A stretch of 62,969 nt of DNA, counting the filler, from Reticulomyxa filosa (taxonomy: Eukaryota; Protista; Foraminifera): assembly GCA_000512085.1 (NCBI GenBank). It is 15 parts of 15 records of this genome, joined end to end, with 100 filler letters (N's around TTAATTAATTAA, not from the genome) between each part and the next. Parts side by side here need not be neighbours in the genome. Positions count along the whole stretch, not along the records: positions 1 to 14,758 come from ASPP01022498.1; 14 more parts are not named here. One strand, written 5' to 3'. The notes under the pieces are model-generated. The model was given only the letters and a program-made list of their open reading frames with translations. It had not been told where the DNA came from and made no database searches. The translations under genes were made by a program, and so were the position numbers. The first letter of the stretch is position 1. Every line of letters begins with the position of its first letter. Shown here in pieces: positions 5,589 to 14,758 of the stretch.

Positions 5589-6785
5589 ATGTCAACAGCT
5601 CCCACCGAAACAATAAGCACAAATGAACCTACAGAGGAAAATGTAGAAAAGATTGATGACGAAGAAAAACATATCCTCTCCTCCTACACAAAGATTGAAG
5701 AACTACAAGTTAAATTCCTGGAACAGAATCCAACCGTAACAATAACCAAAAAAAAAAATATCACAGAAATTCTCCATCAGTGGAACAGACATCAAGAAGT
5801 TGCGTGAGCAAGGCTTTTACACAGTTGAAAGTGTGGCCTTTGCACCTAAAAAACAGCTGATGGATATAAAGGGGATTGGAGACGGCAAAGTTGCAAAGTT
5901 GCAAGAAGCTGCCTGCAAGATTGCAGGAAAGATGCAATTTGTTAAAGCAATCGACTATTTCGAAAGAAGAAGCGATATTGTAAAATTGTCAACAGGAAGT
6001 AGTAATTTGAATGAGCTCCTTGGAGGGGGCGTTGAAACAGGATCAATTACAGAGATATTTGGAGAGTTTGGCACAGGAAAAACGCAAATTTGTCACACTT
6101 TGTGTGTTACATGTCAAGTTAAAGGAAAAAAGCTGTTCTGAGGAACTTCCTTTTTCTGCCCCTTTTTTTTAAAAATCACCCCCCTTTTCTTTTTCCAAAT
6201 TTTTTGTAGACTCCCGCGTCGGTTGGTGGTGGAGAAGGTTGTGCTCTGTACATTGATACCGAAGGAACATTTCGACCTGAACGTATCGCTCAAATTTGCG
6301 ATCGTTTTGGACTAGATGCGTCAGATACGCTCAACAACATTTCATTTGCGCGTGCCTATAACAGCGATCATCAAATGAAACTATTGAGTGAAGCAGCGCA
6401 ACTGATGTCAGAATCTCGATACGCCTTAGTCGTTGTTGATTCAGCAACAGCATTGTTTCGAAGTGAATATATTGGAAGAGGGGAACTAAGTGTACGACAG
6501 CAAATGCTTGGAAAATTTATGCGAGAATTGTTGCGACTGTGTGATGTGTTTGGAGTGGCTGCTGTTATCACAAATCAGGTAGTCAGTACTCCTGATGCAT
6601 TATCTTTCAAAGCGTCGCTCAAACCGATTGGAGGCAATATCATAGCTCATGCCTCTACTACGCGAATTTTTTTGAGAAAAGGTCAAAAAAATGCTAGAGT
6701 TGCAAAGATCTATGATTCTCCAAATTTGCCTGAAAGTGAAATGGAATTTGCGATCTCTGATGGTGGCATTATTGATACATCCTAG
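5589..6785 (+). CDS. RAD51: RAD51 recombinase; exons 5589-5708, 5767-6117, 6210-6785; 348 aa
   Basis: GT-AG splicing keeps the frame. Motifs [70 protein letters not shown] and [12 protein letters not shown] fit RAD51 better than DMC1. Confidence 0.95.
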
Positions 6786-7193
6786 AACTTTTTTTTTAAT
6801 TTTCATTGTGCGAGAAAAATCTTGGCTTGAGTAAATTTTTAGTCCACATTGATTTTTTGCATTTTTTATTGACAAACCTTCATGTAAAAAAAGGTCTTTC
6901 GCAATATCAAGTGCAGCATAACTTTATATCATGTTCAATCATTAAAAAAAAAAGAAATCCTAAAAAACACTACATTTTTGAGATTTACAAAAAAGTATAA
7001 AAGGAAGCATATTTTTTTAACCCACACATGAACGAACCTTCAACTTTTAAATTAAAAAGTGGAAGATATAATTATCAATTTTATTTTTAAAAGTGCATTT
7101 TGATTCTTTTTTCCCGAGATTAAGAAATTTTTGAAATTAACAAAACAATGTCCTGAAATACAATTCAAAAAGAAATAAATTTGATTTGAATTT

Positions 7194-8443
7194 TTATTTA
7201 TCTATCGTAGTATCTTTAGTGCCAAGTGCAGTGTTCTCTTCAGACGAAAGAACTCCACTTGCACAAAAGATTCGTTTTTTTCCGCCAAGCAACTGTGCCA
7301 ACTCGTCATCTTTTGCAATTGCAATCATAATCTATGTGTTAAGAACAACGGATACACACTGATCAGATATTTAAAAATATGATCAAATGAAAGGGAAAGT
7401 AAAGTAATATCAAAAAGGTGGTCAACACACAGTTCTAGGATCGATGCGAGATTTTTGGAAATCTTCTGATACCCTGGAAGCTAGATTAAATATTTCTGCT
7501 ACAATATATTCCAAAGCGCTTGTCAAAAAAAGTGCAGCACCAAAACTTACAGGTTCGTTGAATATCTCTGCTTTCAACAAATCATGTATTACTTTCGATG
7601 GAAAAATCAATGCATTTGATGGATTTTTTGCTTTCTGTAATTATTTTTTACATGTTGCTTTGCTTTGTTTAATGGAACGAACATCACTCAACGGGTGCAA
7701 AACTTTGCACACATTTCGTCGCATTACTTACACAAAATTCACTGAGTTTCTTTGTGTGCAATACAATTGACACTGCAGTTTTCATATGTCGTAAATTCAA
7801 TTGGCGTGACTTATCTCTTTTGTACAGCTCAAATGCCTCGAATGAGAATCGGTTGAACAAATCCCAAACTGTTTTTATTTTCATTTTTTTTTAAATGAGA
7901 CTCTTTTTTTGAAATAAAAAAAAGTGCGAACCAATAGTACTGATCGTCCTCATCCCAATGTTTGATATGCCCATTTTTGGATTAACCTGTTTAAGAACCG
8001 TGAACAAATATCGATTGAAGTCTACTAAAATCGATCTCTTACAAAATTTTCTTTTTTTCTTGATTTTTGGTTGCTTTTGTGCCTGGTTAGGAATATTTCT
8101 GATGGCTGGCGTTGAGGTGTGGAAAATTTTGCTTGGGGCAGGTGTTGGTGGGCGCACTTTTTTTAAAAAAAAGGTAAAGGAATAAAGCATCCACGCGACA
8201 AAGCACAAAACATTTTTTAATGACTCTAACTGCCGTTACGGATTTTGCATACACTACTATGAAATCCCAAACCCACAGCACATTCACGACAGCACGTATC
8301 ATATGGATTACCTCGTGCAGTTTTTCCCGGATTAACTGACATGTTACATCCAATCTAAATTGAAAAAAAGAACGTTCTTGGAAAATGCTTGGTAGTGAGG
8401 AAAGCAAAAAACAACAGATTACTTTGCATTTAACAGGAATCAT
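7194..8443 (-). CDS. Cys/His-finger + histone H2B + histone H2A fusion (histone doublet); exons 8443-8423, 8354-8231, 8156-7932, 7868-7693, 7634-7431, 7331-7194; 295 aa
   Basis: Five short GT-AG introns (68, 74, 63, 58, 99 nt) with matching phases give an 888-nt ORF. H2B fold: FNRYLFTVLKQVNPKMGISNIGMRTISTIVWDLFNRFSFEAFEL...RHMKTAVSIVL...SNATKCV. H2A fold: LIFPSKVIHDLLK...VSFGAALFLTSALEYIVAEIFNLA...KSRIDPRTIMIAIAKDDELAQLL...CASGVL. Confidence 0.85.
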
Positions 8444-8769
8444 TTAAACTCTTTTTAATTGAGAGAAAATGCAGTTATTTCACGTTTAAACAAATCGCAA
8501 ATGCTTCAAAAAAAATCTTTTTGTTTGTTCCCAAACTTTCTACTGTTTCAGGACTCCGTTTTTCCAAGAATTTCACACGTAAACACAAAAGAGATCAAAA
8601 AATTACAACCTTGAACTGTTGTTGCTTTACTAAAGGTATTTCAAATTTTTTGAGAAAACAATTAGTTCGGTTTTCTTATTAATTCATGTGAACACAATCT
8701 AAACTTTGAGAGTTTTTCTTTTTGCTTTCACTGAGACTTTACTTTTAAATTTTCCCCCAAATTGTTGTA

Positions 8770-9438
8770 ATGAGCGAAAAAGAACAAAAGATACAAACTA
8801 TCACCATCAAGACCCCAACTGGGAAAATTGTGGAAATAGAATTAGATGAATCAGATACTGTGGAGAAATTGAAGCAAGAGGTGGAAAAGGAACAAAACGT
8901 AAAAGTGAACAAACAAAAACTTTTTTATGGAGAGGAAGAGCTGCAAGACAGTAAGTTAGTGTCAAGCTATGGAATAAAAGAGGGTAGCTTCGTACGGCTG
9001 TCTGTGCCTGTTCGAGGAGGAGTTGTATTCTCTGCCCCAGACGTGGACAAGCAACAAACTAAGAAAACAGGCAAGAACGAATTTCGTTATTGGACGGTGT
9101 CACCAGGATTAAATTATGGAGGGAGATGTTCTAATGAAGACTGCAAAGCATGCGACGAAAGAGTGATGGCTTCACGTGGATTTGGAAAATTCCAACCAAA
9201 TATCGATGAACATGTTGAAGAAGTCATTAGATGTCCGGGATGCAAACAAACATTCGAACCTTCGGGATTTTATTTTTACAGATGCAATGTTTCAATTACA
9301 TTCAAAAAAGAGGGAGAAAAATCATTGACAAGAATGCCAAAAAAAAAAGTGGAAGGTGAGAATTACTGGGAATTAGGCGGAGAAGAACATGAAAAGGCCG
9401 TGTATAATTATTTGGAATTTGAGGTAGAAAAATTGTGA
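8770..9438 (+). CDS. Ubiquitin-like domain (ends VRGG) fused to an uncharacterised Cys-rich domain
   Basis: Intronless 222-aa ORF. ITIKTPTGKIVEIELDESDTVEKLKQEV...QKLFYGEEELQDSKLVSSYGIKEGSFVRLSVPVRGG is a ubiquitin fold. It is followed by PGLNYGGRCSNEDCKAC...CPGC. Confidence 0.85.
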   Translation: MSEKEQKIQTITIKTPTGKIVEIELDESDTVEKLKQEVEKEQNVKVNKQKLFYGEEELQDSKLVSSYGIKEGSFVRLSVPVRGGVVFSAPDVDKQQTKKTGKNEFRYWTVSPGLNYGGRCSNEDCKACDERVMASRGFGKFQPNIDEHVEEVIRCPGCKQTFEPSGFYFYRCNVSITFKKEGEKSLTRMPKKKVEGENYWELGGEEHEKAVYNYLEFEVEKL

Positions 9439-9839: not shown

Positions 9840-11167
9840 ATGAAAAGTACAGTGCATTTCACTTCGCAAGGAATAGGATTTTGTGAATCCATACTCTATG
9901 ATGTTTCACCTCCAGAAACCATTAACGCAATAACCGCGCTCTTCATAGCCATGTTTGGAATCGTAGGATTGCATGCTTTCAGTCTTAACCGAATAAACGT
10001 CGGTAGCATTTGGAGGATGGTGTTTTCGTTGTTTGTTTTGAACGGGGTGAGCAGTTGCATGTACCATCTGACATTACAGCTGGGATGGAAAGCTACGTTT
10101 TTGAAAACCAAAAAAAAAAAAGAGGAAGACACGAAGCGAACGAAAAACCAACACATAAATGTCTGTCCTGTCTCCTCCACCTTTGTACAAATGACCAACA
10201 GATAGCAGATGAATTCACAATGATATTAGCAGTAGATCTTGGACTGTATCAATTTTTTTTGCAAACACTGCACGAATTGTTGCTAAATGATGACATATAT
10301 CAATATTTGCATCCATTGTTCTCTGCTGCAATGGATAACATTGCAAAGCTTTCATTGGTCATCTTTTTCTGTGGGCACGATTCTGCTAGAAAAATCGACA
10401 CCAGAATGTTTTTAAAACAAAAAGTATTCCCAGCTTTAGTCAATTGGATTGGCTTTTTTATTATGACTGGATGGTGAGCACATTTTAATTTTTTTTTTTT
10501 TTTAAGTAATTATTTTTGCAACGTATACATATATGGTATGTATGTCTCGTGTAAGTGTTGTGAGTTTACAGTTCATCGCGCTAGATTTTCATAGTCACAA
10601 TATGATAGCAATAACCTTTACACTTGCTACAGCAGGCTACGTAATTTTGGTAATAATCAATCAATCAGTCATTTATCGCCACTATCTGTTGTGCTCAAAA
10701 CATCACGCGTCGATTGAAGACATTAGTGAGTTGTCGTATTCATCCCATGTCATGATGAGAACTCTTATTTTTGTTGGAATTTCCGCTGCTCTCTGGATGG
10801 GAACTGAACCCTTTTGCCACAAATACAAACTTTTGGCTTATTTGCATGCCCATGCATTATGGTTTGTTCTTTTTTTTATATCTATCCCTTGGCCGTCATG
10901 TGTTCTCCTCTTTTTTTTTGTAGGCTTTGATGTTTTTTTGTGGTGTACACGTTGCCATAACTGTTCAGGCACATCTTTGCGGGCTATGCATGTTATGTTG
11001 GTGGCATGGTTGGTCTATTTTATGAGTGTAGAATTCATCGTATACCTGTCCATTTACGACGCGGTTGGTTCACATTTTTGGAATTAAGTGATATTACCCA
11101 TCAAGAAAAAGAGCATTTCAAGGTCGAACAAAAAAATTTCCACAAACCTGAACAAAAACAACAATAA
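9840..11167 (+). CDS. Alkaline ceramidase-like (CREST superfamily) membrane hydrolase, 4 exons
   Basis: Motifs FCE..Y...PETINAIT, GVSSCMYHLTL, ADEFTM and HAHALWHIF (SxxxH and HxxxH metal ligands) appear after splicing. Multiple TM helices. Stop at 11165-11167. Confidence 0.85.
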
Positions 11168-11958
11168 TTAATACATGTGCTTTCATTTTTTAAATTATTT
11201 ATCTTTACTGTTGGCTTTGGTTGCGTTTTTTCGTTTTTCTTCCTTTTTTATTTTGAGACTTTTGGATGGATTTTTTTTTTTAAATGTACCATCAAATTAT
11301 CTATATTCTTCTTTTGTTTCACGTACTTTTAGATGCAATCGGAAGATATTTTAATTGCATAACTTTTCACATCACTTTTAAATGAAAACTACAAAATTTT
11401 CCAAGTTGAAAGCATAATTCTAAAGCATAAAAGAATTATACCCGAAATATACTGTTTGTTTTAATATTTTGTGTCAAGCACATTACAAATCTCAAATAAT
11501 GAGTTTTTGTTAATTTTTGTGATACATTCGAAATAGAAATAATTATTTCATACCTAAGATTTATTGTTTTGAATGCGCAGGAAGTATGAAAAATGGATTT
11601 ATAAGTTCAGTTAGCTTCTCTTTACAAACTTACTTCCCTTTCTTTTTGTTTTTCATTTGTCTTTTATTTAATTCATTTTTGAAAGTATATTCGTATTACA
11701 CTTAACTATCAGCAGTCCTTCCTGTAGCTGCTTTATTAAATGATTTACGAAACTATTTTTTCATTGAAATTGTCTAGTCACAAAGTTTTATGTGATTCTT
11801 TTTTTACGAACTACGTAATTTCAGCATCAAAGATAGTGTTTAAAATTTGCTGAAAATTTCTAATTTTCGAGACATTATTAAATAAGATGAATAAGATTAA
11901 AAAATAAAAAAGACTTAAAGCCAACCCAATCGCAGAAAACTGTAGATCAACAAAGTGA

Positions 11959-14758
<2,800 letters not shown>

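Follow-up and report, generated by a model that had tools for sequence, protein, structure and literature searches.

A predicted family of spliced H2B-H2A histone doublets with a cysteine-rich head in the foraminiferan Reticulomyxa filosa

Histone repeats are stated to be rare in eukaryotes (Irwin and Richards, PMC11222145), and a review of the subject gives cellular nucleosome-like H2B-H2A fusions for animals only (PMC13088155). The present work concerns a gene predicted between positions 7194 and 8443, on the minus strand, of a 62,969-nucleotide stretch of DNA from the foraminiferan Reticulomyxa filosa (assembly GCA_000512085.1; “the window” below denotes this whole stretch), which would encode an H2B fold followed by an H2A fold in a single spliced protein of 295 residues, together with two paralogs that lie elsewhere in the same genome. 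A search of the literature found no paper tying Reticulomyxa or Foraminifera to histone doublets. The evidence assembled here makes it highly probable that the window doublet is a genuine protein-coding, intron-containing host gene in which H2B and H2A are fused behind a Cys-rich head. What is new, as far as the genome sequence can tell, is a cellular H2B-H2A family that is spliced and bears a head, the window copy being its diverged member.

The closest viral counterparts are the doublets of the Marseilleviridae (for example melbournevirus; PMC8357426, PMC12297534), which likewise place an H2B fold before an H2A fold, join the two by a short linker and keep the acidic patch in part. They are intronless viral genes, are paired with an H4-H3 doublet and package viral DNA, whereas the window doublet is host chromosomal, has five introns, carries an extra Cys-rich head and has an H2A half that falls outside the viral clade in the trees described below. 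No H3-H4 doublet was noticed in the R. filosa genome, although the histone scan was not gone through in detail. The histone domain of SOS1 and the folds of ABTB2/Cca3 (PMC13088155) are also pseudodimers in which an H2B-like fold precedes an H2A-like fold, and they are thought to be non-nucleosomal; they differ in forming the N-terminal part of large signalling proteins and in being only about 22-30% identical to histones, whereas the window protein stands alone at 295 residues, has clear H2A and H2B homology and possesses an H2B-type basic tail. The RasGEF arrangement found in SOS (DH-PH-REM-Cdc25) does not follow the histone folds at this locus, where the frame closes at 7194, 45 codons past the last intron, with no additional domain. 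In the account that PMC13088155 gives of Miyake et al. 2026, the animal proteins called HSIH-DHF are likewise predicted single-domain H2B-H2A or H2A-H2B chains; as defined in that account they are at least 60% identical to nucleosomal histones and belong to animals only, whereas the window protein is ~33-43% identical to histones. Several animal entries resembling HSIH-DHF (P0099 and P0244 among them) look like merged models of adjacent histone genes.

A further set of doublets comes from environmental and cellular sources (the P0115 family, P0181 and the MMETSP entry P0166). These are likewise single chains in which H2B precedes H2A, from eukaryote-like sources, and their presence on transcript-sized contigs, one of them from a transcriptome collection, indicates that they are apparently expressed. 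These doublets lack a Cys head and, wherever genomic sequence can be consulted, introns as well; several of those aligned have an L1 that is one residue shorter and an HW motif, and an H2A.X-like SQ-x-Y closes many of the chains. Canonical histones are much nearer to them than to the R. filosa doublets, from which most of them lie apart in the larger of the trees described below. Since the protein databases contain many eukaryote-like H2B-H2A doublets from transcript-sized contigs, and since one doublet (P0181) lies on a 25-kb cellular contig, cellular fusion is less rare than the literature suggests. An earlier interpretation of the locus, made from the DNA without database searches (the sequence-only reading), had taken the H2B-H2A order to be characteristic of giant viruses and of SOS, a view which these fusions in other cellular eukaryotes do not uphold.

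Two of these sources call for separate mention. A 25-kb metagenome contig of the Joint Genome Institute (L022), which also encodes a STAT protein with SH2, RPL35Ae, a DnaJ protein and an RGS protein, holds two tandem intronless doublets (10001-10663 and 10740-11465), one conserved and the other divergent with a hydrophobic end resembling a tail anchor, a pattern that parallels the coexistence of conserved and diverged copies in R. filosa. The MMETSP transcript P0166 (302 aa) joins H2B to an H2A.Z-like half and has the C-terminal part of its H2B duplicated, and it represents a different kind of doublet.

The gene model of the window doublet was obtained by reading the minus strand of contig C22498 over positions 7000-8700 and joining the exons in a local script for frame continuity; all sequence searches, family scans and fold predictions for this gene were run on single exons. 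The assembled model has six exons (entry phases 0, 0, 1, 1, 0 and 0) separated by five GT...AG introns (68, 74, 63, 58 and 99 nt) of compatible phase, and comprises 888 nt, or 295 codons and a TAA. Putative exon 1 (8423..8443) consists of an ATG and six codons (MIPVKCK) and ends in phase 0. It is followed across intron 1 (8355..8422, GT-AG) by exon 2 (8231..8354), which encodes a 41-residue module with five cysteines and a histidine, the Cys5-His head. Beyond intron 2 (8157..8230, phase 1), exon 3 (7932..8156, net charge +15) contains a Pro-rich linker, a basic tail in which the patch KQPKIKKKRKFCKR sits ahead of H2B alpha1, and the H2B fold from alpha1 to the first half of alpha2. Intron 3 (7869..7931, phase 1) falls within H2B alpha2, the second half of which is encoded with alpha3 and alphaC by exon 4 (7693..7868, 176 nt). 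The H2B/H2A junction is occupied by intron 4 (7635..7692, phase 0), after which exon 5 (7431..7634, net charge 0) supplies an H2A N-terminal extension, alpha1, L1, alpha2 and L2, and, across intron 5 (7332..7430, phase 0), exon 6 (7194..7331) supplies H2A alpha3, the docking region, a divergent acidic tail and the TAA stop.

This assembly bears out the six exons, the five GT-AG introns and the 295-residue frame of the sequence-only reading, and the translation contains all four of the motifs that it quoted: the basic patch, the linker SFAP/KAKNPSNA, KDDELAQLL and CASGVL. Exon 5 has no in-frame ATG and is preceded, two codons upstream, by a stop, so that the H2A part is translatable only through the splice from 7692 to 7635. 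The least certain part of the model is exon 1, which is a plausible prediction: it was proposed because, in the window copy, exon 2 has ATT where the ancestral gene had its start codon. Within the 326 bp that end at the divergently transcribed neighbour, no other exon combines an ATG with a compatible phase, and a TAA stands in frame directly upstream of exon 1.

The histone homology of the exons was evaluated with local profiles built from 117 H2B singlets and 62 H2A singlets. Exons 3 and 4 match positions 6-51 and 57-111 of the H2B profile (expectation values, E, of 2.6e-9 and 7e-8), and exons 5 and 6 match positions 38-102 and 104-136 of the H2A profile (E 5e-20 and 0.01). Among 170 other open frames of the window, the best scores on the same profiles lie at E 0.16-1, and even the short exon 6 stands ahead of every one of these background frames. 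Because the matches tile first the H2B and then the H2A profile in order, the exons are collinear across introns 3 and 5. Solved structures in the PDB agree with the profiles, exon 5 matching eukaryotic H2A (E 6e-9) and exon 4 matching H2B (E 0.003 to 1e-6). Taken with the profile scores, these matches identify the H2A fold and docking region in exons 5 and 6 and, in exons 3 and 4, the H2B fold from alpha1 to alphaC with the basic tail that precedes it, which is the order of folds that had been read from the DNA. At best, the H2A exon of the window copy reaches 43% identity to histones, and its H2B exon about 36-42%.

A HMMER search of the whole protein library with exon 5 found no close relative, and its top scorers were rejected as relatives because they are artefacts of tandem-H2A models. 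Many of the library's “double histones” (P0001-P0008, P0099, P0244) are either head-to-tail repeats of one H2A or read-through models of adjacent animal H2B and H2A genes, and such artefacts gain their high rank in searches from having two scoring stretches each.

When the genome (101.9 Mb in 50,809 contigs) was searched exon by exon, two further loci were found at which a relative of the head is followed, on one strand, by an H2B-like exon and then by an H2A-like exon. Paralog A occupies C10151:5573-about 7170, and paralog B, in tandem with it, extends from C10151:8132 to the end of that contig and is continued on C9445. The window copy, A and B all have the Cys5-His head, the H2B and H2A parts and four introns that agree in position and phase, which lie after the head (phase 1), inside H2B alpha2 after ..TI-G (phase 1), at the H2B/H2A junction (phase 0; 58 nt in the window copy, 178 nt in A and 122 nt in B) and after H2A L2, behind PRH/PRT (phase 0). 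The head exons measure 124, 124 and 127 nt and the second H2B exons 176, 176 and 185 nt in the window copy, A and B respectively, and a one-residue insertion in the docking region, GG-x-[KR]-R, is common to all three. Over the histone exons, identity is 53-57% between A and B and 32-40% between the window copy and either of them. The window copy is the most diverged and fastest-evolving of three paralogs, and not a lone oddity. A constraint that places the three doublets together in the tree of H2A halves was not rejected, and in the 99-row set described below it gave a tree 20.7 log-likelihood units better than the unconstrained one. Descent of the three paralogs from one fusion ancestor, in which the head and four of the five introns were already present, is judged to be highly probable jointly with the status of the window doublet as a genuine host gene.

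The rest of the genome's histone complement is ordinary: canonical intronless H2A and H2B singlets and a normal set of other histone genes coexist with the doublets. Among named proteins, the best match to the singlet H2B is one of R. filosa, at 86%, which agrees with the stated host. With the H2A exon of paralog B, a word-index search returned generic H2A only, at 50-64% identity. A divergent H2B-like singlet at C10825:22610-22870 (plus strand; L016) is distinct from the canonical H2B copies on C8657 and C22367. Paralogs A and B seem at first to contain frameshifts, but these were dismissed as assembly errors or allelic differences, the frame being restored by one base in overlapping contigs (C36227 against C10151:5100-6000; C9445 against C10151:8300-8611; in A, within an A5/A6 run); frameshifts in this assembly should not be taken as signs of a pseudogene unless a second copy agrees.

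The head of the window copy is 71% identical to that of A and 44% identical to that of B. It is found in five genes of the genome, namely the three doublets plus a pair of genes from an unrelated family (C6082:2313-2435, minus strand, L012; C14076:825-947, plus strand, L014) whose downstream domain of ~265 residues is without a Pfam match, and because it opens genes of a different family as well, it resembles a shuffled leader exon. Ten positions are invariant in all five genes (G2, C3, V7, P9, C21, C22, C25, H32, C36 and R39), and the spacing C-x2-C-x6-H-x3-C suggests a small zinc knuckle. The protein starts with MGC in four of the five genes, the window copy being the exception, and by consensus MGC is a plausible start for N-myristoylation and palmitoylation. 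The head may accordingly be a zinc-binding module or, in the four genes with the MGC start, may carry lipid. In each of these four genes (L010 and L013, about 1490-1503; L012; L014) an AG stands right before the ATG and after a pyrimidine-rich stretch, an arrangement suggestive of a conserved intron that ends at position -1. The window copy retains the AG acceptor, at 8355-8356, before the first codon of the head, which there reads ATT.

No family for the head was found in Pfam, no look-alike in the ESM Atlas, and no relative in the metagenome or viral contigs, and the vicinity of the doublet gave no Rfam or histone stem-loop match. One viral match (L025) was discarded as a chance agreement over 9 residues with no cysteines after it. 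An A20-type zinc finger was also considered for the head and dropped, the paralogs being without the first cysteine pair and there being no Pfam match. An AlphaFold2 model of the head from the five sequences has a predicted local distance difference test (pLDDT) score of 58, which is low confidence.

Synonymous sites are saturated between the copies, and selection was therefore evaluated by comparing the proportions of nonsynonymous and synonymous differences (pN and pS) and not from the corresponding rate ratios (dN/dS). Between the window copy and A, pS is 0.71 and pN 0.43 over all aligned codons; in the head exon pS is 0.88 and pN 0.14, while in the histone exons pN is about 0.5. Since nonsynonymous change is lower than the saturated synonymous change, the copies are old and have been held by purifying selection, in agreement with the earlier suggestion that the frame has been kept by selection. 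In the head, residues G2 and C3 have persisted while their codons changed synonymously, which argues that the region upstream of Met-12 is translated. Nonsynonymous branch lengths derived from the three-way distances are ~0.44 for the window copy and ~0.21 for each of A and B. By these codon comparisons, evolution of the window copy has been fast in the histone folds, while constraint on the head has persisted.

The residues that have changed were called, in human numbering, from the translation and from HMMER alignments of exons 5 and 4 with PDB histones. Among the basic residues of H2A, R29 is replaced by V, R32 by D, R35 by K, R42 by P, R71 by E and K74 by Q, while K75, R77 and R81 are kept (K75-S-R77); the set of core DNA-contact basics (R29, R32, R35, R42, K74/K75 and R77) is therefore not preserved. 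The LLPKK tail of H2A has also been lost. In the acidic patch, E56, E61, D90 and E92 are kept, E91 is D and E64 is N, and on the H2B side E105 is K and E113 is N, so that five of the six H2A positions are acidic, both H2B contributors are gone and three of the eight positions are lost overall. The sequence-only reading had listed E56, E61, D90-E92 and KSRI as kept and the H2A alpha1/L1 arginines and the K119 site as lost, and the alignments agree with it on both counts, position 91 being D; the two H2B glutamates are losses beyond those which it named. The net charge of the H2A core exon is 0 in the window copy, +7 in A, +6 in B and +6 in the host's own H2A, while the H2B part of the window copy keeps its charge. 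In paralogs A and B the DNA-contact positions are still basic, and neither of the H2B glutamates of the acidic patch has been lost.

These features permit a proposal for how the proteins would work. The chain would run from the Cys5-His head through a Pro-rich and basic H2B-type tail to the H2B fold, a linker of 8-10 residues, and the H2A fold with its docking region, and the two folds would pair within the molecule as an H2A-H2B handshake. Engineered single-chain H2B-H2A constructs of the same order are among the PDB matches (7wlp, 7vcl, 5vey, 2jss, 4m6b, 7dlx), and since these have been solved, the order of the folds is suggested to be compatible with folding. Because A and B keep the DNA-contact basics and the H2B acidic-patch glutamates, they probably enter nucleosomes as pre-fused variant dimers with an extra head. 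The window copy, having lost most of the H2A DNA-contact arginines and three of eight acidic-patch residues and having evolved about twice as fast, most likely does not wrap DNA in the canonical way; it would act through the surface of its histone fold and through its head, either serving as a scaffold or competing for H2A-H2B partners, namely those whose binding does not depend on the complete acidic patch. With the positive charge of its H2A core lost, the window protein is consequently a less likely component of the non-canonical nucleosomes that had been envisaged for it than its paralogs are. The decoy role, at the acidic patch or for chaperones, that the sequence-only reading also put forward would be speculative.

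Several points weigh against reading the window locus as a genuine doublet gene of host origin. In the Pfam scan of the single exons, exon 5 gives a Histone match of 18 bits, below the gathering cut-off of 26.4, and the other exons give none. A complex prediction with the four exon chains scores 0.43 against 0.25 for the control, which is evidence neither for nor against pairing. ATT stands in place of the ancestral start, and if the predicted exon 1 were left out the protein would begin at Met-12. The splicing of the gene, including that of the key intron 4, is deduced from conservation. The loss of key residues, together with the long branch, could mean relaxed constraint. As to origin, the H2B halves resemble the H2Bs of other eukaryotes as closely as they do that of the host, and an approximately unbiased (AU) test on a 40-row set of 69 columns does not reject a grouping of the doublets with viral repeats (p 0.31).

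The alternative that best survives, although it is improbable, is that the window copy is a decaying pseudogene of the doublet family whose frame has stayed open by chance. It would account for the ATT, for the lost arginines and acidic-patch residues, for the nonsynonymous branch of about double length and for the failure of a six-frame scan of the genome with PF00125 to detect the window locus. A decaying gene would not, however, be expected to have all 295 codons open and all five GT-AG pairs intact at ~32% guanine-plus-cytosine (GC) content, where stops are frequent, or to retain a head that is 71% identical to that of A, with a pN of 0.14, despite saturated synonymous sites and with G2 and C3 kept through synonymous changes. 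The hydrophobic pattern of the histone fold, moreover, still scores E 5e-20 in exon 5, and an in-frame upstream exon with an ATG exists to replace the lost start.

Somewhat less probable again is the acquisition of the family from a histone-repeat gene of a giant virus, with the introns and head gained later, which corresponds to the domesticated viral gene offered as one origin by the sequence-only reading. The H2B-H2A order is that of the Marseilleviridae and of many metagenomic giant-virus repeats (PMC8357426, PMC11222145), and the AU result and the absence of any special likeness between the H2B halves and the host H2B are both compatible with it. The genomic setting speaks for a host gene, however. 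The doublet lies between a RAD51/DMC1-like gene (5800-6785, plus strand) and a ubiquitin-like-domain gene (8770-9438, plus strand), with an MCM-like gene (11959-14304, minus strand) further along; the first and last of these have introns and were recognised by eye from their motifs, while the ubiquitin-like gene, which is transcribed divergently from the doublet and lies 326 bp from its exon 1, has a Pfam ubiquitin match of E 1e-18 and a Cys-rich C-terminal half and possibly shares a promoter region with the doublet. Paralogs A and B adjoin WD40, cyanase-like and FYVE genes, and no viral hallmark gene was found near any of the three copies. The GC content at the doublet is 32-35%, as in the rest of the contig, and the copies have four spliceosomal introns in common.

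Phylogenetic evidence on the viral question comes from the H2A exon. The larger tree has 99 rows (40 eukaryotic singlets, 30 environmental doublets, 25 IMG/VR viral histones, the three doublet halves and the host H2A), and in its maximum likelihood (ML) form A pairs with B on the eukaryote side, apart from the starred clade of 16 viral repeats, while the H2A half of the window copy has a very long branch of 2.8 changes per column. In neither of the two ML trees does any of the three doublet H2A halves fall inside the starred clade. The motif GNAAKD, present in 6 of about 227 H2A sequences, is shared by A and B with the host's own H2A; identity to eukaryotic singlets, at 54-62%, is at least equal to that with viral repeats; and a pattern scan of viral contigs with the H2A exon of paralog A alone found nothing. 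A viral origin thus has no positive support, and it is highly probable, again jointly with the reading of the locus as a genuine host gene, that the histone halves are of eukaryotic type, with nothing that ties them to viral repeats. As a separate observation, a 911-kb contig assigned to a virus (IMGVR_UViG_3300042923_001726; L029) carries a singlet H2A with GNAAKD that pairs in the tree with the canonical H2A of R. filosa, and this could reflect capture from a host by a rhizarian virus or a mis-binned eukaryotic contig.

The weakest alternative, retention of intron 4 to give a head-H2B protein alone and leave the H2A exons as an untranslated relic, draws on the reliance of the splice on conservation and on the stop that ends the H2B frame two codons into the intron (..SFAPVE), with a stop likewise in paralog A, but it is very improbable, given that the H2A exons are open and hold a conserved internal intron in three copies with saturated synonymous sites, that exon 5 scores as strongly as it does on the H2A profile, and that the junction intron is phase 0 and GT-AG in all three copies.

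The reading of the locus as a host gene therefore stands, with the stand-alone, host-encoded, intron-containing fusion and its conserved Cys/His head much as they were first described from the DNA. On the present comparisons the window protein is most likely a host-derived, pre-fused H2A-H2B dimer with a new role, and the balance favours an origin of the family by fusion of eukaryote-type histones within this lineage, on trees that are too short for proof.

A wider interpretation can be offered only tentatively, and is on the whole doubtful in its full extent. According to it, Foraminifera carry a cell-encoded family of pre-fused H2B-H2A proteins with a lineage-specific head; cellular eukaryotes would have made nucleosome-type doublets independently; and the conserved members would serve in chromatin as tethered or targeted dimers, for example at the nuclear envelope, while the window copy would have become a module that does not wrap DNA. 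If this is true, the parallel provided by the tandem doublets of the metagenome contig L022 hints at a recurring theme in which a conserved doublet stands beside a divergent one with a hydrophobic C-terminal anchor.

The significance of such a family lies in the treatment of histone repeats as a hallmark of giant viruses, and in the use of their rarity in eukaryotes as an argument in the debate over whether the viral repeats represent intermediates from an ancestral stage or fusions that were made later (PMC11222145). An evidently long-lived rhizarian family of three members with shared introns, together with the further cellular doublets, would mean that the fusion arises and persists in cells. 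The three R. filosa copies would also provide natural material for asking whether a pre-fused dimer can enter host nucleosomes, what effect an added N-terminal module has on a histone dimer, and what becomes of a histone dimer after the loss of DNA binding.

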